From Schizochytrium sp. TIO01 (lineage: Eukaryota; Protista; Bigyra: Labyrinthulomycetes): DNA of 64,000 nt. The stretch covers positions 844,747 to 908,746 of the forward strand of contig SMSO01000037.1 of assembly GCA_004764695.1 (NCBI GenBank), written 5' to 3'. The translations under genes and the position numbers were made by a program. The notes below the pieces were generated by a model. It was given only the letters and a program-made list of their open reading frames with translations, had not been told where the DNA came from and ran no database searches. Shown in pieces: positions 2,930 to 38,657 of this stretch (position 1 is its first letter; every line of letters starts with the position of its first letter).

Positions 2930-4360
2930 ATATTCGAGATCTGTATAAAAGGTTCCAACGTGTATATGAAGTCCGGCGAGTGGGAATAAGACGGGGAATG
3001 TTAGTAATCGTAGAAGGATAAATAAGATCAATTCCATCAAGAATTGAAAGTCAACAATAATTCAATTTGTCATGATCTGTGAGTACACCCATGCCTTTAA
3101 TACCATCTCCGTTCTGGACAGGCTCAAGCTATCGCCTTTCCAAGAAGATTGCTCTCGCTTCAGAGAGCAGCACATCTTTTCGGCCGTCCAAGTGCGCTCG
3201 TTTAGCTACCTTGTAGGACTGCTTCATGAGAACAGATCTGGACGGCTAGCTTGGCAACCGTTGCTTTGAGCCTACCCCGTCTTATCAAGCAAAGGAAGAG
3301 TAAAGGGGAATTCTTAGCACGTACCTTCGCGGCAACCCATCTTGGCATTCAACCACGCAGCTTCAGAGACCCAGAGCTATTGAGCGTTGCAGGGCTCTCT
3401 GTTAGAGCTTTGAGGATTTTTGCAACAACAAAGAAGATAAACCATTTATTAGCATAATGGTTACTACCCTCACTAGTGATAATTTATTCTAGCATTAGGA
3501 GCTACATAGGTGGTACTAGTAGTTGCGATTCTTATAAACTCAAGTGAAGCTGCAATGCATAATGGTAGATTCCCCATGAAGTCCAAACGGAAATAGAAAC
3601 TTGGTCATCGACAACAGTTGATGTTTTTGGATTCAGGTAGTCATTCTTACCTCAAGGTCTCAGGTCTATGTTTTTAAAGATATTGAAAGACAGAAAATAC
3701 TAACTATTTAGTTTGGCTATTATTACTGATGCTTAACGGGACTTTTCAGAGCAACTAAAATGCTGATTGCAATGCAAGACGCAAGAGTCAATGCCAGCAT
3801 TGCTAAGCTGTAATTAAATTATATATACAGCAGGTGATAAGAACTCATGTGTCTTCACAATATTGCCTATGACATCACCGGAATTCACCCATAATGGGGA
3901 CATGGGCAGCAAATCGCATTAATGCTCCACGATGGAGAGAGACATACTTCAATCAGTACATACTGCGTCAGATTTGGAGAATAGGTAGCTATATAATAAT
4001 GTGAACTTATTTTTTAATTATATAAATGGCGGAAACGGAAATTTGCTGAAGCAACAAAATTAAGGTTTCTTGGTTTGCGAATTGAGAGTCAACAACTAGT
4101 CACCACTCTGGAAGATACTGACATAGTCAAACATACCTAGTATAGTTGATTATTCAACAGATCTTAGACTAGCTGAGAGAGAAAACGTAGACTTTCAAAA
4201 AGGCAAAACCTTAAAGAAAGGCAAACTTAAGCTTTTTGTGTGTCAACAAGTAAAACAGGATCTAATGTAGCGTTTTGGCTGGCTTGGACGCTTGTCTCGA
4301 AGGCAGTGCAGAACGGACGAGAGAGCTCAATAATAATACAATAAAGAAAAAGCGAGTATT

Positions 4361-5182
4361 TTACTGAGCTTTCTTGACCTTGGGGTCGGGGATTTTATCG
4401 ATCTTGGCGGGGGCCTTGTCTTCTTGAAGAGTACGAATAGTACCTACAAGCAAGTCAATGTACCAAGACCAATTAACGAGGACAAGAAGACCAACACAAA
4501 CAAAACCCATGTTCTCTGGTGTGAGCTCCAGAAAAGTTCGATGACGATATTCAAAGGCAAAAAGGTAAAAGGTCCAGGTGAACCAAGCCACGCGAACTGG
4601 GAAACATAGATTCAAGAGCACGCCACAAGGCTTGATGTACTTATTCATCGAGCCTTGCTCCATCTGTGCAACCTCAAAAAGGCAAACAACAGGGGTGCTG
4701 AACTCTGAGATCGAAAGGGCTACGCAATAAATTGGATGCAAACCTACAAAGAGGACTAGGATGAGACCGACAATGCAAGAAAAGTGATGAACCAAGTACC
4801 GAAAGTCTGTTTCTGCAAAGAAGAAGCGGATAACCACATCCTGCACCATGTAAGCGAGCATGAAAACACAGATTTGCTGGCCTTCATGAGCATGGTGCGC
4901 AAAAGCTTCCCATGGATTAGATACCAAGGTGGCATGAACTCCCTCGAGGGTACCTCCACTCATGTCCAAGACAAGCCACTGAAAAGAGAACAAGAACATC
5001 AGCAGTGAATACGCAGCGGCAAACGAATTACTGCTCCGCAGTCTCTTTTCACCATTTTCTTGATCCACAAACTTGCACACAAAGCCACACGTCGCAACCA
5101 GAATCGTTACAAGCACCATCCACCACACTCGTGGCAAGGGCTTCAGCATTTCTGCTGCATCGACAGTGGTGGCGCTCACCAT
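4361..5182 (-). CDS. TLC (TRAM/LAG1/CLN8) domain membrane protein
   Basis: 273-aa ORF with several TM helices and TLC-type motifs (YMVQD, YLVHH, SEFSTP, FPVRV, NWSWY). Confidence 0.8.
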   Translation of the reverse strand: MVSATTVDAAEMLKPLPRVWWMVLVTILVATCGFVCKFVDQENGEKRLRSSNSFAAAYSLLMFLFSFQWLVLDMSGGTLEGVHATLVSNPWEAFAHHAHEGQQICVFMLAYMVQDVVIRFFFAETDFRYLVHHFSCIVGLILVLFVGLHPIYCVALSISEFSTPVVCLFEVAQMEQGSMNKYIKPCGVLLNLCFPVRVAWFTWTFYLFAFEYRHRTFLELTPENMGFVCVGLLVLVNWSWYIDLLVGTIRTLQEDKAPAKIDKIPDPKVKKAQ

Positions 5183-24700: not shown

Positions 24701-27637
24701 GGAAGATAATGCTGTCTCATTCTTGACGCTGCTACCGCGTGGAAGCTCGTTGGATATTGAAAACGAATTTTGAAACTTATCTTCCGTGTTTGATCCGAGA
24801 ATCATGTCAAGACTTCCATCATCGATTTCCGGGCACAGCGACAGAATGCGCAGAGCCGATTGCGCAACAGAAGATTGAATCTGCTTAGCGTCTGCACTTA
24901 GACTAATTTTCCCTGCTGAGTAGAAGAACACAACGCACGCGAGACATGTCATGAAGAAATGAGCAACTCCATCATTTTGAAGAGCCGTAACTAAATCAGA
25001 TGCGGTATCAATGGACTCAGACAATGCGATCATTTCTTTGGACAAAAGACTCATGAACAGCTCCAACAGGCGAGACGAAGATGAATCCTTGTGCTCAGCT
25101 TCGGCTTTGGCATTTTTCAACTCTGATGACTCTTTTTGGGCCACAACCTCATCCGATTCGCCCGTCTTCTTCTTTCCCCGCTTCTCCTTCTTTTCCTTTG
25201 CTTTAGAACCAGACATGGCAGACTCCCGACGAATAAAGTCTGCAGCGAGTCTACCAATCATTAATAATGGAAGGAGGTCATGAAGGCTACTGGATGGGCC
25301 AGCCGCATCAAGAGCCTGCTCCATTACTTCTTGCGTAAACTGAACTGCAAAAGCCCCAACACGAGCAAGATCAAATTTTCCTGTTGCAACTAACTGCTCA
25401 CGAGTGCGGGCTGCAGAGAGCACTGCATCGACATCATTAAGAGGAAGTTCAGTTGGTGCAATCTCTGCAACTTGCTCTTGTCCAGTAACGATTTCAGATG
25501 TTCTCGCAGAGCGGGTGGTTGCAACTGACCCTTTTGCGTTTGATGGTTTGTTTTCCTCCTCGATTTTGCGAAACACGAGCCTGTGATCAGGATCATGTTG
25601 TGCAGAACCTGAGAGAAAGCAATCATTGCAAAGATCAAAATCTTCACAATCCTGGCACTCATATCGACAACCAGAGACAAGAACTTTTTGACAGCCGTCA
25701 CAACGATACACAACTACATTAGAACTTGAGTTGCCAGCACCATCACCTTCATCACCCTCATCCATGTAATCTTCATTATCCGTTGGTTTCGCTTGTGCCT
25801 CTCTACCCAAGCTCGTGTTTCGAGAAGACTTTGAAGTTCCTGAGATTGATGTGGATCCATGTGCGGCTCCTTTCTCACTAATGTGCCAGAAGTTGGTTTG
25901 CACAGTTTTGAGTGCTAGGGTGACGAATTGGGCAACCGCGGCATGGCTTTGAGTGGTCATAGTAATAATGATACCAACTGACTTATGTAATTGAAAAGCG
26001 GCAGCCTCCTTATCACTCTTCTCTAATTGCCAAAATAACACAGCAGTAGCGTTGTAAAGGCATTGTATGAGTGTACATACGCTTCGCTCGAGTTTCATTA
26101 TCGAGTCATCACGAAGTTGCGGGTAGGAGCGTAACAACAAGACACCTTGATTTCTGACTGCAATCGCAAGAGGCTTAAAAACAGTTTCGAAACGATCTGC
26201 CTTTAACAACCAATCTTGAAAAGCGATACCATAGCGACGACGGGCCAGTTCGACAATGTGGCAGATCCGCATAGCCTTGGTAAGACTGGTGTTCGCCAGA
26301 GAACGATCACCTAGTTCACGTTCAAGACTTTCAAGGCACCCCACGACAAGAGACTTGGTCGCATGAGTACTGTCTAATTCTGTGATTGAACCACGTAGTA
26401 TTCCTGAGTTCCCTTCCTTACTCTCAGCTCGGAACTTTTCTAGGAGTGCAATCTCTGCAAAATGCATTGACGATAGTCCTTGTTCTTGTGACAAAAGGTG
26501 AGCCGAACACTTCTCAGAGAGTTGAGATACAAGATCCTTCCTATCGACTTCACTTACTTCTGAAGACAATTTCGGCAGGTAGATAGCAGCATCTACGCTT
26601 TGCATCCAGATAGCATGGAGTTCGCTTGTAAGGCCTGTATCAACTTGGTCAAGACTAGGCGAAGTTGACAAGATATAGCTTGTTAGATCCCAAGCGGGGC
26701 GCATAAAGTCAAACCAAAGTTGTTCCTTAGTGGACATCGCATAGGCTTCACCTGCTACAATGCTCGGAGTGGTCGTTATTTTTGAATTGTCTTTAACAGA
26801 CTCATCAGAAAAGACCACATCAATGCTTCCTGAGATCTGCGCAAAAAGAGTCTCTAAGGGGGTCAAAGGAAGGTCATACCATAGAGGTTTATCACGCTTG
26901 GAAAGGGCAACAGGTCGTTTAAAAGGACCCACATAGAAGAATTCTGTGCCTGCATTTGCATGTGAACTTCCTGAGAGCGCTTGTTTGTTGTATCGATCGT
27001 GCTTCTTCTTGACGTCCAAGACCTCGGCAGAAGCGCCACCAGAAGGGCGTTTGTGCTTGCTTGAAACTCCAGTGGAGGTTCTATTATCCTTGCTACGTTT
27101 GCTGCTTGCCACAGGGGGTGAAGGACCAAGACAGACCCTCAAAGCCACGATTGCATGATCAGGATTTGCGAATTGAGCTGTAAGAACTAGAGGCTCCTCA
27201 ATGCTCTGTTTCCGTCCAGGGCTTGTATCCTGACGTTTGTTTAGAAAAGCACCAAGACGTTGCGCACTACCTACAGATTTCAGCATCGAACCGCCCCATG
27301 AAAAGCTGGAGGTCAGAGGATGCTCGGGAGACAGAAGCACGAGTTGTTCGTAAAGAAAGGAAGTTGGAACCTGGGTGGATTCTGTTTGCGCAACAGAAAG
27401 CTTCTCTCGCACGAGAGCATCATCGGTCTTAATCGATATGTGACTCTCCAGGCTCGACCGTCTACCTCGGCTGGACCGTTTGGACAACTTACTGGATTTC
27501 GAAGACTGGACTGTCTTTTCTGTGCTTAATCCACTTTCCCTAGCGGTTGCATTGGCCACGCTCTGAAGCTTATGGGTTCCATCGACCAAAACCTTTACTT
27601 TGCTCTCCAAATTTTTTGCGGCAAGCTCGGTACACAT
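15782..27637 (-). CDS. UBR4: UBR4/BIG (p600) E3 ligase, C-terminal portion (ZZ finger, Cys-rich region, armadillo, UBL, hemiRING)
   Basis: ZZ finger (YRCDGC...YECQDCEDFDLCNDC, ~25580-25710); CPRC...CGEVVFQCRQCRRIN...FLCVDCGYCRYAKF; QEDYF; MRDLRMKI..MEFLVAGKIINIDLPIRLVYQKVW; PMEVTYRLMGIDGEATEDFVE; hemiRING CVICKEGY...FNAVHFSCH...EWEGAELRN. Confidence 0.9.
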   Translation of the reverse strand: MCTELAAKNLESKVKVLVDGTHKLQSVANATARESGLSTEKTVQSSKSSKLSKRSSRGRRSSLESHISIKTDDALVREKLSVAQTESTQVPTSFLYEQLVLLSPEHPLTSSFSWGGSMLKSVGSAQRLGAFLNKRQDTSPGRKQSIEEPLVLTAQFANPDHAIVALRVCLGPSPPVASSKRSKDNRTSTGVSSKHKRPSGGASAEVLDVKKKHDRYNKQALSGSSHANAGTEFFYVGPFKRPVALSKRDKPLWYDLPLTPLETLFAQISGSIDVVFSDESVKDNSKITTTPSIVAGEAYAMSTKEQLWFDFMRPAWDLTSYILSTSPSLDQVDTGLTSELHAIWMQSVDAAIYLPKLSSEVSEVDRKDLVSQLSEKCSAHLLSQEQGLSSMHFAEIALLEKFRAESKEGNSGILRGSITELDSTHATKSLVVGCLESLERELGDRSLANTSLTKAMRICHIVELARRRYGIAFQDWLLKADRFETVFKPLAIAVRNQGVLLLRSYPQLRDDSIMKLERSVCTLIQCLYNATAVLFWQLEKSDKEAAAFQLHKSVGIIITMTTQSHAAVAQFVTLALKTVQTNFWHISEKGAAHGSTSISGTSKSSRNTSLGREAQAKPTDNEDYMDEGDEGDGAGNSSSNVVVYRCDGCQKVLVSGCRYECQDCEDFDLCNDCFLSGSAQHDPDHRLVFRKIEEENKPSNAKGSVATTRSARTSEIVTGQEQVAEIAPTELPLNDVDAVLSAARTREQLVATGKFDLARVGAFAVQFTQEVMEQALDAAGPSSSLHDLLPLLMIGRLAADFIRRESAMSGSKAKEKKEKRGKKKTGESDEVVAQKESSELKNAKAEAEHKDSSSSRLLELFMSLLSKEMIALSESIDTASDLVTALQNDGVAHFFMTCLACVVFFYSAGKISLSADAKQIQSSVAQSALRILSLCPEIDDGSLDMILGSNTEDKFQNSFSISNELPRGSSVKNETALSSNDKVSIGDSEKQISAESAFWNPILALARMKLPEQGVYGLGKGTSLPRALLQSIAALASVCITDSVHVEENLVLHGIIPLVSHQRFSFLRDPCSSSLSVLCSKNPSLSWHRDKAIFEANMRVLRDVLRKIQPTMASDHVLRGGLMPGFLPGDASYEDMAQSTMVIQKLHISISGAIEHWQRYTAEADSFRCLFSSLSSVTSGSAVLIFEMLIRAIPSAVQTETKHSKENSSTTQRMLVRMLTLQPAFLNKLVDSFMLEHVSENVRLLAAVLWRRIYVTLKRDVAEDVKAEAWVATRDEVRATMVAHMVSRFDTLLDTGVQFGIELVHMIRIMSSRGELKEADFQPVVSRALGSKVSNLMSVLGPLVLSDEAHIRNVQLGNLVNLSCTMTSPSESETKHGDACENKRQHGQRDSQSGTRTASLMKNGTTIKINTSSLAATGRDKSATENTPSHSSPAYKISAENSLRSVALPPVASSAITLHTCNTCRAPRREFKTLALQPSRRESSFTSNSMLVRMDCMYSVNAIHVSVQTQSSVFGCGVDKVSVFCNSNPSADLAVLQSQENQWHEIATFKMGKESSFRLTARLPVPVSTFNLLFRYHTTSELEFSQSSERQTCPRCNRVVTNKNGVCTCGEVVFQCRQCRRINQEDRNAFLCVDCGYCRYAKFNYTLEARVSTDYPPIQSEVDRECANRSIASFEDTAVKLRESILEQTSSSEDDGIMWWEQQGRHLCGAVISAAPAPRPSDESSSKLAKSSTDQRRGGKSSRWVLNKFQDAEVGGQPKTASIDFLRSIGLLRDHRGLGENSTISLSRHRARGLEWSKHQGSATSSCNTSNNTNGDPNLSKALEAKRLALGDTFQNNLQSGEMLQLLELGLQDPQTLVHSSSTSKKDSSGAAKKTSFRRAKSKENKDNSDLSIVKVQSLFDRICSEPNGVSADLHRHFISAPEVYSMSSQALYQKLLTTRLALGEIRRQLALYSRRNARAMLSNSDSEVKSDRSTSLSSFRDHIYSMLSERHRQEPGAVLYTCQSCATEFMDSLFRLVASLKRSPWLFGDVPQPMRASLLRQCLNFGVASVLESCEELDETINSNQQVIEGDDVDEDEEDDEANAEGMVEIYEDDEGNRYTVHLGDDGKHLTSEISAGDNIDEHGEDGEDNNMIHVLESGNGGEEDEDEEDDDEEEGDEHDNEEVADENDEDHAMEEHQDEHDGDNGHEDISAALSAGHGINAMEILAVDSDAEEDEQFDSAVANAIWESRKKSKSSSGKEHDEVGRSGGHSDQQNPDLDMVKVKAGDKDDVKSVNGDHSGTVPLSKLLRAYGTGSLPAIQGIAHLDHDALEFTRDELQKRILVVLNHPESLNNCNWLIGLVEVLRSLCKNPDDGGSEYMLMLCHFIVETDTSSWTYAAFGRAIFAPFIRTLNLSISTEDLQGSAEIGLLRSLETKHSCVDARNIAARRVTLFVKKYHSSLSKFVVRDEAPTSLFSEAFFSGSSWKWLWTVASRSSQVCVQNAIERLLADNIICMEPMELAELYVGLSTYIMKLWTTERKTMYPANVRNVFGLLKSVMHSKSGVTLNLAAGRGFLKNICAIIRSECRQVAIFEQTMLQHPADSGVVTTGLDQAMAWVDAAADILLIAVKPTPAKRVLARFYLDDIVEAEVTLSSLRCISNVDSIQNTRNNLQLVMTMVTDEREFDKDIFAAATRLLSSNASILESMTSDPDQTHALVQRLIRLVGELAGIVEPVKQLPNLFLLMNRLRSQEDYFSSNLNSNPINIEEIPVPNDDDDNQGEGSAGGGNIRKSPQTMEGFLESVLGLDVVSGSNVLHSTNAAAGSAKAKAEPTMRDLRMKIAKDLNFTNAMDIMEFLVAGKIINIDLPIRLVYQKVWLPHLREHGGNEEHMHEADWPHSDDSDDEMGEGEEDDVGRPMEVTYRLMGIDGEATEDFVEKLEDDTDDDEDPEVRYAKTKMLQTEGLAALLSILTAACKHFSLSSKIARECVAGMVNLIGLACNCSTNRALLASPSFRGIRILLGVLRASFQEPSAGDLAEQVVVILERLVVERIDDKQSSTDAGSLGMGVPASSSTSSPVPGSEEDTVGFGRSQLLVSLEHLDDPSRQTTIRNRRALCRLLPFLTFGRREEMQILVDRFQRMVDLERVDKSLDEAVSMQDDLKTVYWSVMAMGKDKNATLLRDMALETGFTPSLVNHVVKIWSQVSEGGNASSSSSGKEKKRKKKSMRDAYVKLASTPSVLLALRLLTGLALSHEPTQQLVRQQGLLELAFEMETIPAKEVPFIGEYADAFMNAASTDNTAQQEFLAGLRDERRKAKLTRASAKRKLMMQQMLRGAVSSLSTAEPETSRKRKRDGVDSDGDGSGEVEGVTTGARAPSDAYGSRANSQQNPDEDVGAGSSNSAEGTVEPEKKKKKKEKKSKKPKKPKKSKTNSMPDWMKEMEELVNEEHPCVICKEGYTNRPSEAMGIYIFSKATDVDSNINYVNVDGNASGIVGIKEYLMSLSKQPDALSTLDMAKIQEHLPGVFSILQFKLADSSNAEDSLSDVSVTRSKGNLVSPSLGSSSRRRVIGTSSVTSFNAVHFSCHSEAVRVDLSHDKAKRSEWEGAELRNTNVKTNGLIPLRGPATISTERYNSLVEQYFEKLQRRIIPSLTSSNCPCALSIVLLDIRSLLLRLCWDESLSMDTNGGGHDSNFKLLVPLVSMAAHLLATGSSKQRTSLEDTLNEFCACYFLEASSQVVKSGKTADVGKVSDEQQEMHVEYSGSSGVTGSVPAASSPQDMSESKTLLPDFCFNTVVSLFLMEDEQWQTSRLAFLQSVATYGKDVAQGHLAAGSGVISNQRRSSLSSAFSLGQGSETSVRDATMPALRILIVVDQLRQLRGKGPNGLVETILQDEHGAIQVVSDICNLFEQNLLSAKSEEEILRAGGFSDSAVVMWNSQVFHHPVQPELLNRNSTQATSMGEDSTQVEANPTSAPASS

Positions 27638-36537: not shown

Positions 36538-37182
36538 ATCATTCATTCTCCTTTCTCACCAAGGAAAAGAAGCCTACTTGGAAACAAGAACATGCTACAC
36601 TCCAGAAACATTATACTCTATAGTACAGGACCTGCCTTCAAGTAGGAATAAGAATAACCCACTGTACGAACACAGGTCTCAGCACAGAATAAACAGAATG
36701 TTACGAGAAAGAGAGAGTGGCTGAGGCTGCCTACGCCAAACACTAGCCCAGCTCCACGCCCTCCTTCCTTAAGATTGAGCGTCGTCATGCCTACGAAGAC
36801 ATAGCCACTCTTAGCACTTCGAAGAAGAAGGCACCGGGGAATGGGATTTCATGCAGAGAGCGAAACTAACTCCACGGAAACCCTCATGGTGTTTACAGTC
36901 GGCGGGTTTGCCACAGCGGCATCCCCAGCTGAGGCGTCTTGCCCCTTGAGGCTTCCAAAACTGCCTGTCCAAGACGACTATCTCTGGCGCCTCCACGAGT
37001 GGCCCTGACGAGCGAGCGAGCTTTCGCAATAGACCGCTCTGTAAAGACTGCGCTGTTGGGACCAACCGCCGCTACTCACTCTCAGTGGCATCCGTAGGGA
37101 CCGCAGGGTGGCCATGCGCGTAACACCTGATACACGAGGAGCTGAGCAGCAGTCCATCAATCCTTCGAACCCAATCTCCTGA

Positions 37183-37280
37183 CCTATAAGGTTTGCAAAA
37201 CCTGCGTTTCCCCAATCGCGGGATAGCTTTTAGCCCGCGACTCAAAGGCAGTTCTCAAACCATGTCCTTGGATGGATACT
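37183..37280 (-). ncRNA. Putative Fanzor omega-RNA scaffold at the element right end
   Basis: Lies directly 3' of the Fanzor relic. Contains stem TCGCGGG (37240-37234) / CCCGCGA (37222-37216) and hairpin AGGTTT-TGC-AAACCT (37203-37189) before the terminal GG. Expression is not shown and the 5' limit is unknown. Confidence 0.5.
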
Positions 37281-37727
37281 AGTAGGTGGCGCAAAAGCCT
37301 GGTTCTGGCGGCGTGGATGTCACAATCGCTTGCGTGTTTGCGTTTTTTGGGGGCACTTGAAAACCTTGGATGTTCCGAGCATGTCGTGGATGGTACTTGC
37401 AACATTCATTCACGGCATGGTTTTGAAGTGCAAGTCTCTCGGCGAGTAACCAGTTTACATACACCATTGCCAAAGGGGGAAGCTCGGCTCTGCGGATGAG
37501 CCCTTGGCGAAAGCCATTGAATGACAGACACATCATTCGAGCTGCCTTGGTTTTGATCCACCTTGTTGTGCTCATCCCTTGGCGAAAGCCAACGAATGAC
37601 AGACACATCATTCGAGCTGCCTTGGTTTTGATCCACCTTGTTGTTAACTTGTTGAGGTTTCAAATTTAGGCAAGAGGATAACACGCTCGTTTTCTCAGAG
37701 CCACAGTGCAAGCTTGCGGTGAGTCTC
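37280..37727 (-). pseudogene. Fanzor (Fanzor2/IS607 TnpB-like) RNA-guided nuclease relic, C-terminal RuvC and zinc-finger half
   Basis: Manual translation across stops and frameshifts gives ETHRKLALWL*ENERVILLPKFETS; WIKTKAARMMCLSFxGFRQGLIRRAE; CKLVTRRETCTSKPC; LGTSKVFKCP; DCDIHAARTRLLRHL. These are colinear with the Fanzor/TnpB pattern HxKxAxWLxENYxVILLPxFETS..TARxMxxLSHxxFRQRL..ExYTSKxC..LGxSKVFxCP..DRDxNAARNILL. Confidence 0.85.
37501..37644. repeat. 75-bp tandem duplication inside the Fanzor relic
   Basis: 37501-37569 is nearly identical to 37576-37644 (CCCTTGGCGAAAGCC...GATCCACCTTGTTGT), with few substitutions. Confidence 0.95.
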
Positions 37728-37728
37728 A

Positions 37729-38030
37729 GTAGTCCAGCAGGACGCGCAAGCCAGGCCTTTTGACATTGGTCACTCTACCGATGTCTCTGTAGATGGTAGA
37801 GGCGTCTGGATAGGCACGCTGGAGGTAACCAATCTGGTATTTGAGATCCTCTTTTTGGAGACTAAGGCGTAGATGATGATGGTAAGGTCAGTGCTGTGGT
37901 TCTCGCGGCCGCCGGAACACACCGTAGTAGCTATTGGTGCGCTCAACGTCGTCACTTGCGTATATGCGATTGTCTTCGAAGAAGCTCCCGAAGGAGGGGC
38001 ACTTGCTGAGACGCCAAACTTCTGGTTGAA
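37729..38030 (-). pseudogene. tnpA: IS607 TnpA serine recombinase relic (N-terminal part)
   Basis: Manual translation gives a MerR-like HTH remnant (KFGVSASA...IAYT) and IIIYALVS (37880-37857; decayed YARVS catalytic-Ser motif). After a frameshift it continues QKEDLKYQIGYLQRAYPDASTIYRDIGRVTNVKRPGLRVLLDY, matching the IS607 pattern QKxDLxxQ...YP....DIGSGxNxKRxGLxxLL. Confidence 0.85.
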
Positions 38031-38053
38031 GTAGTTTGATAATTTGATTTGAT

Positions 38054-38153
38054 TTGAAGGTTTGAAATCATTTGAAAACTTGAATTGAATGTATGAAGTA
38101 GTTTGATAGTTTGCATTGAATGTATGAAATAAATTGAATTGAAGGTATGAAAT
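38054..38153. repeat. Four ~15-bp direct repeats (TTGAAKGTWTGAART) at the putative IS607 left end
   Basis: Copies start at 38054, 38085, 38116 and 38139. Confidence 0.85.
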
Positions 38154-38657
38154 AATTCGATACACCAAAAAGCTTAAACTCTCTTTTTTATTCATTATTT
38201 TATTTTTATTTTTTACACTAAAAATTAAAATTAGAATAGTAACAAAGTCCAGAGTTAAAATTGAAGTTCAAGAGATTGCCTCTTTAATACTGAGTTCTTT
38301 TATTCTTTTACTATTTAATTAATAATAATAATAAAAGAATAAAAAAGAAGGTTATTAGGTATATTTTCTCAGAGATCTGTATGAGGGGATTACGAATCCT
38401 AGGGTATCCAGTAGGAATCTTTCATGCCTATACATAGCTAAACACATACATATATGCTGCCTTGTAAATGGTCTATCTCTAAATAGCCTCTTTCTTCAAA
38501 TTTCTGCCTGCTTTCTTTCGCAGCCTAGACTCGTTCAGATTCTCTATTGCTGGGCTGGGGTGAAGTTCCCCGCTAGGTTTTCGCGCGCCTGTCCTCTGTT
38601 TCGGTTTTACCCGTCTTCACGTGTCCGTCTGATTCCCATTGGAGTCCTGCATTCGCC

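Follow-up and report, generated by a model that had tools for sequence, protein, structure and literature searches.

Transposons of the IS607 type encode a serine-recombinase transposase, TnpA, together with an accessory protein, TnpB; they move through a circular double-stranded intermediate and insert at a dinucleotide without duplication (PMC13565253; doi 10.1101/2023.08.09.552727). A GG dinucleotide has been reported for this insertion (PMC13565253). Eukaryotic and giant-virus elements of this type that carry Fanzor2, termed IS607EU here, have been described since 2013 (Bao & Jurka 2013, PMC3627910), and Fanzor2 has been characterised since 2023 (Yoon et al. 2023, doi 10.1101/2023.08.09.552727; Jiang et al. 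2023, PMC10530073). Both the IS607 mechanism and its association with Fanzor2 are found in the literature (PMC3627910; doi 10.1101/2023.08.09.552727; PMC13565253). Named IS607EU examples include ISvMimi of Acanthamoeba polyphaga mimivirus (L79/ApmFanzor2, PDB 9b0l), ACa-1 and ACa-2 of Acanthamoeba, and ISvNY2A_1 of a chlorella virus. A RuvC-II glutamate that has moved to a position just upstream of the zinc finger is the signature of Fanzor and pro-Fanzor proteins (doi 10.1101/2023.08.09.552727; PMC13565253). The locus considered here lies in a 64,000-nucleotide stretch, termed the window, of the Schizochytrium sp. TIO01 genome (contig SMSO01000037.1; G000:C36:844747-908746), which comes from a eukaryotic assembly of 64 Mb in 37 contigs (GCA_004764695.1). 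Positions 37176-38052 of the window, read on the minus strand, are identified with high confidence as a decayed, 5′-truncated copy of an old non-autonomous family of ~1 kb, derived from an IS607EU element encoding TnpA and Fanzor2.

The window copy is a fossil of a known kind of element, and the kind of system is not new. As in IS607EU elements, the intact relatives of the window copy have a serine recombinase with a MerR-type helix-turn-helix (HTH) upstream of a TnpB-like nuclease in the same orientation, no terminal inverted repeats or target duplication, and a structured non-coding 3′ end. Their nuclease carries a DPG motif, a glutamate upstream of the zinc finger and an RD(D) RuvC-III motif, and its best sequence and fold matches are both to ApmFanzor2. 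Unlike the described IS607EU elements, the window copy is dead and truncated, and the deletion derivative to which it belongs codes for neither of the two proteins; the ends of the family carry AG or TG instead of the GG reported for IS607.

The bacterial IS607 of Helicobacter pylori likewise pairs a serine-recombinase TnpA with an accessory TnpB. The elements described here differ from it in their eukaryotic host, in a junction dinucleotide other than GG, and in a proline at the RuvC-II position (‘ILLPKF’), with the glutamate next to the zinc finger in its role. In bacteria, derivatives of IS200/IS605 that resemble palindrome-associated transposable elements (PATEs) or miniature inverted-repeat transposable elements (MITEs) encode no protein, keep both ends including the guide-RNA right end, and are multiplied in trans. 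The short family described below is, in contrast to these, a serine-recombinase (IS607-type) element in a eukaryote. A literature search, which was not exhaustive, found no description of an amplified non-autonomous IS607EU family and no paper linking IS607-Fanzor2 elements to Aurantiochytrium.

Protein remains and the shared deletion

Three-frame translation of the minus strand of 37180-38040 reveals what is left of a serine-recombinase N-terminus and, after it and in the same orientation, of a TnpB/Fanzor C-terminus. The recombinase part retains a helix-turn-helix region, a catalytic ‘IYA.VS..QKEDL’ motif and ‘DIG...N.KRPGL..LLD’, and the fragments that can be read include ‘..FGVSAS..’, ‘RIYASDDVER’, ‘IIIYALVS’ and ‘QKEDLKYQIGYLQRAYPDASTIYRDIG..NVKRPGLRVLLD’. 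The nuclease part retains ‘HRKLALWL.EN.RVILLPKFETS’, ‘E.CTSK.C’ and ‘D.DIHAAR..LLR.L’; its fragments include ‘THRKLALWL’ followed by a stop and ‘ENERVILLPKFETS’, as well as ‘KAARMMCLSFNGFRQGLIRRAE’, ‘ETCTSKPC’ and ‘DCDIHAARTRLLRHLL’. Only traces of the Fanzor signature are left, namely ‘E.CTSK.C’ and ‘D.DIHAAR’. Stops and frameshifts break every frame of the relic, no open run exceeds ~140 codons, and no frame covers the motifs coherently.

Pfam searches with the separate stop-free pieces of the relic gave only a marginal Resolvase match (E=0.099) and no match for the TnpB pieces. An HTH_8 match on one piece was rejected as spurious, since it was produced by a 75-bp duplication. Because the Pfam results on pieces were marginal, homology was established through the genome's own intact proteins. 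When these were searched against the whole window with tblastn, the intact TnpA matched 37968-37723 (49% identity over 82 residues, E=9e-17), while the intact Fanzor matched 37730-37653 (88% over 26 residues, E=4e-8) and, secondly, 37459-37283 (E=1e-3). Within the window, both proteins match only the relic. Fanzor homologues from other organisms match it as well (P0013, 5e-9; P0002, 3e-5). By sequence, the relic is thus read as the remains of a serine recombinase and a TnpB/Fanzor protein, with a similarity far beyond chance.

An earlier reading of this DNA, made from the sequence alone, had proposed a TnpA fragment followed in the same orientation by the C-terminal RuvC and zinc-finger motifs of a TnpB-family protein. 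It had also noted only short open reading frame (ORF) fragments here and had called the copy dead as a coding unit. The translations and the two strongest tblastn matches confirm the first claim; the others hold too, as no open frame explains 37180-38040 and all frames are broken. The profile searches that it had recommended succeeded in part: the Pfam profiles were marginal on the pieces, and the translated search with the intact proteins was significant.

As DNA, the flagged stretch matches at least 40 other loci in the assembly at 66-82% identity, with its recombinase and nuclease parts matched contiguously. These genome-wide matches are split into q29-385 and q396-870 because of the 75-bp duplication. 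When aligned to the full-length element, all 19 of the other copies that were fetched have an identical deletion of 1.19 kb, with a gap from ~572-580 to ~1764-1768 of L045:2700-5010, a locus holding an intact element. The junction fuses recombinase codon ~135 (‘LLD’) out of frame to Fanzor codon ~366 (‘(T)EIHRKLALW’). The junction 28-mer, found at 37708-37735 in the window copy (G000:C36:882454-882481), has 59 matches on many contigs genome-wide at no more than three mismatches, compared to 0 for a reversed control. Since the junction is common to 19/19 copies and to these genome-wide matches, the deletion predates the insertion of the window copy, which was therefore inserted as a non-autonomous element. 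The shared junction and the out-of-frame fusion further indicate that the family was founded by one protein-less deletion derivative and amplified later. The coding sequence that the short derivative retains, ~0.4 kb from tnpA and ~0.45 kb from Fanzor, is dead ballast.

Two other explanations are decided by these data. It was implicit in the sequence-only reading that an autonomous, full-length IS607-Fanzor2 element had inserted upstream of the gene UBR4 and decayed in place, its middle being lost locally. Both protein remnants do stand in the correct order and orientation, and the window copy does have private rearrangements, but a deletion junction that is common to 19/19 other copies and occurs 59 times in the genome is older than the insertion. 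Decay in place is thus highly improbable. The second explanation, in which the resemblance arises by chance or low complexity and the relic is not real, would agree with the marginal Pfam results on isolated pieces. It has a negligible probability and is refuted by the tblastn E-values of 9e-17 and 4e-8, by the homologous loci (at least 40) and by the 59 junction matches, of which the control has none.

Coordinates and distances were taken from a majority consensus built for the short family. Its copies lie at Kimura two-parameter distances of 0.12-0.25 from the consensus (mean 0.18). The consensus is ~78-80% identical to the young autonomous family described in the next section. It is out of frame at the junction, and compared to the parent it shows additional indels, one of which is a 32-bp deletion. 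The relic aligns to it over positions 176-966 alone, with identities of 84% and 80%, and is among the most diverged members of the family. Its parts are as follows, in window positions.

37176..37254, minus strand: right-end (3′ non-coding) module, degraded (alignment with 19 short-family and 16 full-length copies; consensus blastn)
37255..37728, minus strand: remnant of the Fanzor2 C-terminal third, from ~residue 366 of a 492-residue ORF to the stop (tblastn, translations, 80% consensus match)
37501..37644, no strand: private 75-bp tandem duplication within the Fanzor remnant, 1.9 copies, 97% match (Tandem Repeats Finder)
37708..37735, minus strand: founding deletion junction (breakpoints the same in 19/19 other copies; junction 28-mer)
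37729..38052, minus strand: remnant of the tnpA N-terminal part, with the MerR-like helix-turn-helix region and the first half of the catalytic domain (tblastn, consensus match, Pfam Resolvase E=0.099)
38049..38155, no strand: local tandem repeats with periods of 31 and 23 bp, from consensus positions 169-201 (Tandem Repeats Finder, consensus matches, family alignment)

The tnpA remnant contains a degraded catalytic-serine motif, ‘IYALVS’, together with frameshifts and stops; the consensus matches at 84% over 38052-37578 (blastn). The Fanzor2 remnant spans the RuvC-II region, the shifted glutamate, the zinc finger and RuvC-III (‘D.DIHAAR’), and its 75-bp duplication is not present in other family members. 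At the right end, consensus positions 937-966 match 37211-37182 at 87% (blastn). Position 37182 is the last clearly homologous base, and the terminal ~11 nt have diverged. At the left end, consensus positions 1-175 are missing, so that the true left end of ~170 bp, including the tnpA start codon, is gone. The repeats at 38049-38155 are a tandem triplication of an internal segment of 23-31 bp, with extra consensus matches at 38126-38094 and 38149-38129. With its left end gone and its right terminus degraded, the window copy does not have both transposon ends. It now has no coding capacity and very probably no mobility.

Intact autonomous relatives

The sequence-only reading had supposed that this lineage hosts or hosted an IS607-Fanzor2 family, and had advised a genome search for intact copies and a consensus. 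Intact copies with TnpA and Fanzor2 were indeed found in the same genome. In a six-frame search of the assembly, Pfam Cas12f1-like_TNB gave 36 matches, of which 17 fall within open frames of 615-682 codons. Pfam Resolvase gave 29 matches, located ~1.3 kb upstream of the Cas12f1-like_TNB matches on the same strand. The genome contains ~17-20 young autonomous elements of 2.2 kb (e.g. L045:2754-4959), which share 94.5-100% identity with the reference copy. Of the 11 complete young copies examined, 9 have both frames open. The intact TnpA has 232 residues (L045:2870-3565) and matches Pfam Resolvase at 5e-20 and MerR/HTH_17 weakly, at 0.01-0.02; the intact copy thus encodes the MerR-HTH serine recombinase with a resolvase domain that is expected of IS607. 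The intact TnpB-like protein matches Cas12f1-like_TNB at 1.5e-13 and HTH_OrfB_IS605 at 1.4e-9. Its gene lies downstream of tnpA on the same strand in the intact copies, and the relic remnants keep this order and strand. More diverged or partly broken full-length IS607-Fanzor copies are found at G000:C4:727106-728821, C35:2604847-2606536 and C6:720260-721974. They possibly belong to older autonomous lineages that stand nearer to the short family's parent.

The nuclease of the autonomous copies is, by its sequence and predicted fold, of the Fanzor2 type and closest to the mimivirus Fanzor2, and it is predicted to perform RNA-guided cleavage. Among solved structures, the best match in a sequence search was 9b0l_P (mimivirus L79/ApmFanzor2; E=3.7e-19). 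In a fold search with an AlphaFold2 model of the nuclease (predicted local distance difference test, pLDDT, of 70-92 in the core), 9b0l_P again ranked first (E=3.3e-15), followed by ISDra2 TnpB (8h1j, 1e-11); the Fanzor1 SpuFz (8gkh) reached only 1.7e-4. The DPG motif ‘ALDPGVRSF’ aligns to ‘GIDPGLRDF’ of L79, and the canonical position of the RuvC-II glutamate is the P of ‘ILLPKF’ (G in L79). A glutamate is found directly upstream of the zinc finger, where ‘QESYTSKTC’ aligns to ‘NEYLTTKTC’ of L79. The DPG, RuvC-II and zinc-finger-glutamate columns are invariant in an alignment of Fanzor relatives (A1). The sequence-only reading had described intact copies as candidate new programmable nucleases, and candidates they fairly are, though of a kind that has already been described.

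When viral contigs were scanned with the Fanzor alignment, relatives were not found in them. A scan of bacterial and archaeal genome contigs gave only 5 matches, all on metagenome-assembled genome contigs of 0.6-2.1 kb, which makes them a weak guide to true bacterial hosts. In Logan contigs of four public runs, coded as four different organisms, pieces of the intact element were found at 90-100% identity over 2771-5010 of L045. The RNA status of these contigs is a guess, and they show presence, not transcription, transcript ends or strand. Their summed k-mer depth is orders of magnitude higher at ~2934-4883 of L045 than at the ends, a pattern compatible with transcripts or with high copy number, which the contigs cannot separate. 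One contig of run X5 joins position 4961, just past the right end, back to 2850 (within L045:2700-5010), and could represent either the junction of an excised circle or a head-to-tail tandem. Another contig, from a sample labelled as a different organism, has an internal deletion of the short-family type (3216 to 4470).

The two genes of the intact elements overlap extensively. An open Fanzor frame of ~661 codons begins ahead of the tnpA start, runs to the Fanzor stop (L045:2862-4850, equal to G000:C32:2840861-2842849) and overprints the whole tnpA gene in the +1 frame; the same is seen at L033-L048 and at metagenome loci L049-L128. For the ORFs of IS607, the papers that were searched mention only a “partial overlap” (PMC9956272). 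Inside tnpA of 38 non-redundant metagenomic relatives, 34 stops occur in the +1 frame compared to 121 expected (standard deviation 7.8) from synonymous-codon shuffling, while the +2 frame has 406 compared to 459 expected. Of 21 relatives, 19 have their first ATG downstream of the tnpA start codon in the +1 frame, where it opens an ORF of 460-684 codons. In the element of this genome, the next ATG is at L045:2994 and opens an ORF of 618 codons; it coincides with the ORF start of an MMETSP transcript. An MMETSP transcript with 91% identity agrees with a marine protist as host. Given these reading frames, it is a reasonable hypothesis that leaky scanning could yield TnpA and Fanzor from a single mRNA.

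The amino-acid conservation of the overprinted Fanzor N-terminus is 0.242 against a null of 0.194, compared to 0.208 against 0.182 in the +2-frame control. Since this is barely above the control, the claim is limited to a frame that is kept open and does not extend to a conserved domain. The AlphaFold2 model is disordered at this N-terminus, with pLDDT <50 at residues 1-88 and 105-152.

Transposon ends and the right-end module

The young and old families can be compared at their junctions, which are marked here by a slash. Young elements begin with flank-(C)AG/TATGACAAAAACCG... on the left and finish with ...TAAAATCTAAG/AG-flank on the right (left TATGAC, right CTAAG). The old short family begins with TG/TACCTATGAAAACG... 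and finishes with ...TTCTAAG/TG; written more briefly, these ends are TG/TACCTATG...CTAAG/TG. The left junctions of the young family read ...CAG/TATGAC in 5/8, and the right ones read ...CTAAGAG/ in 18/18, followed by A or T in 17/18. TG is found at both ends in most copies of the old family, whose left junctions carry TG in 6/11 and GG in 3/11. Only the second base, G, is constant across the junction dinucleotides of the families. The short-family termini are conserved and resemble those of the autonomous family. Terminal inverted repeats and target duplications were found neither in the young family (11 left and 18 right ends, with flanks unrelated to each other) nor in the short family, which fits the expectation for a serine-recombinase element.

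The junctions carry AG in the young family and TG in the old one, so that a GG crossover was rejected for both; neither family follows the GG rule reported for IS607. The sequence-only reading had described repeat-bearing ends that both terminate in GG, and this description fails. The left GG (38166/38165) belongs to unrelated flanking DNA. The right GG (37184/37183) is part of an internal conserved ‘ATAGGTT’ motif, ~7-10 nt before the right terminus of the family, and the repeats are the private triplication described above. Separately, the young-family junctions (L024-L048) suggest a CAG/W target, perhaps a 3-nt motif similar to a target-adjacent motif (TAM). The right flank of copy L025 starts with sequence resembling the left end of the short family (TACCTGTACCTATG...), and the insertion of this copy may have taken place beside the end of an older element.

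In all lineages, three hairpins, A, B and C, lie between the Fanzor stop and the right terminus (L045:4851-4959). The relic (37176-37254, minus strand) has an intact hairpin A, with arms at 37240-37234 and 37222-37216. Its hairpin B is deleted and its hairpin C is partly kept, at ~37206-37194. Among sub-lineages, one position of hairpin A is C-G, U-G or U-A, and others vary between G-C and G-U. Hairpin B has a compensatory A-U/G-C pair difference between the young and old families, and hairpin C is invariant. RNAalifold recovered only hairpin C from 18 right-end sequences, at -0.5 kcal/mol; decayed copies are poor material for covariation. The pair changes fit a constraint at the RNA level, as on a putative omega-RNA scaffold, and the hairpins are candidates for such a scaffold and/or for recombinase binding sites.

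The hairpins also bear on the possibility that the stretch or its right-end module has been co-opted, either as an orphan omega-RNA (guide) locus for Fanzor supplied by autonomous copies or as a cis-regulatory sequence in the promoter region of UBR4. The relic has kept hairpin A whole, wobble and compensatory differences in hairpins A and B separate element lineages, and the relic sits ~1.2 kb upstream of the UBR4 open frame. Nevertheless, the relic is without hairpin B, divergence has affected its terminal ~11 nt, and with 80-84% identity to the consensus it ranks with the most diverged copies of its family. Co-option is therefore very unlikely.

Proposed history and genomic setting

The history of the short family starts with one ancestral element, from which 1.19 kb was deleted, joining tnpA codon ~135 to Fanzor codon ~366. 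The resulting protein-less derivative retained both transposon ends and the 3′ non-coding hairpin module, and multiplied to at least ~59 dispersed copies, which now differ by ~12-25% from the consensus. In the window copy, moreover, the left end was lost, two tandem duplications of its own arose, and stops built up. By analogy with established IS607 biology, the short copies would have been mobilised in trans by the recombinase of autonomous relatives. This mobilisation would proceed by serine-recombinase cut-and-paste via a circular double-stranded intermediate, with a 2-bp crossover. Of the points on which this history draws, those that are observed are the homology, the deletion common to the copies, their number, their termini and their decay.

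Several points weigh against this account. The AG/TG crossover dinucleotide comes from the junction consensus, and AG is present in only 5/8 and TG in 6/11 left junctions. Mobilisation in trans is deduced from structure and copy number. Because the left end is missing, truncation at insertion is indistinguishable from later deletion, and insertion at this locus is itself presumed.

A broader proposal builds on the reading of the window copy as a member of a short non-autonomous family. The family may be a eukaryotic, MITE-like, non-autonomous OMEGA element, protein-less but still in possession of its recombinase-binding ends and omega-RNA module. Autonomous copies could then supply TnpA in trans to move it and Fanzor2 to protect it through restorative homing, and in those copies leaky scanning could give both proteins from a single mRNA. 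This is put forward tentatively and is, as it stands, rather unlikely; the window copy would still be only a fossil.

The relic by itself is without consequence. The genome that contains it records IS607-Fanzor2 activity in two layers: in an old burst, the deletion derivative spread to at least 59 copies, and a young autonomous family apparently still has its coding capacity. As a protist that can be cultured and has many native Fanzor2 elements, nearly identical to each other, alongside their non-autonomous satellites, the organism would be convenient for testing the role of Fanzor2 in its own host. Homing, the service of protein-less copies in trans and the choice of target motif could all be tested there. 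In addition, the autonomous copies would offer a further pair of Fanzor2 and putative omega-RNA for genome-editing screens.

The gene downstream of the relic is a UBR4 homologue on the minus strand, with an open frame of ~6,700 codons (15782-35982) that matches Pfam E3_UbLigase_R4 (1.6e-128) as well as zf-UBR and ZZ. This gene for a giant E3 ligase of the UBR4 type consists of two abutting open frames of 3,951 and 2,795 codons, and their overlap at 27595-27637 may reflect a short intron or a frameshift.

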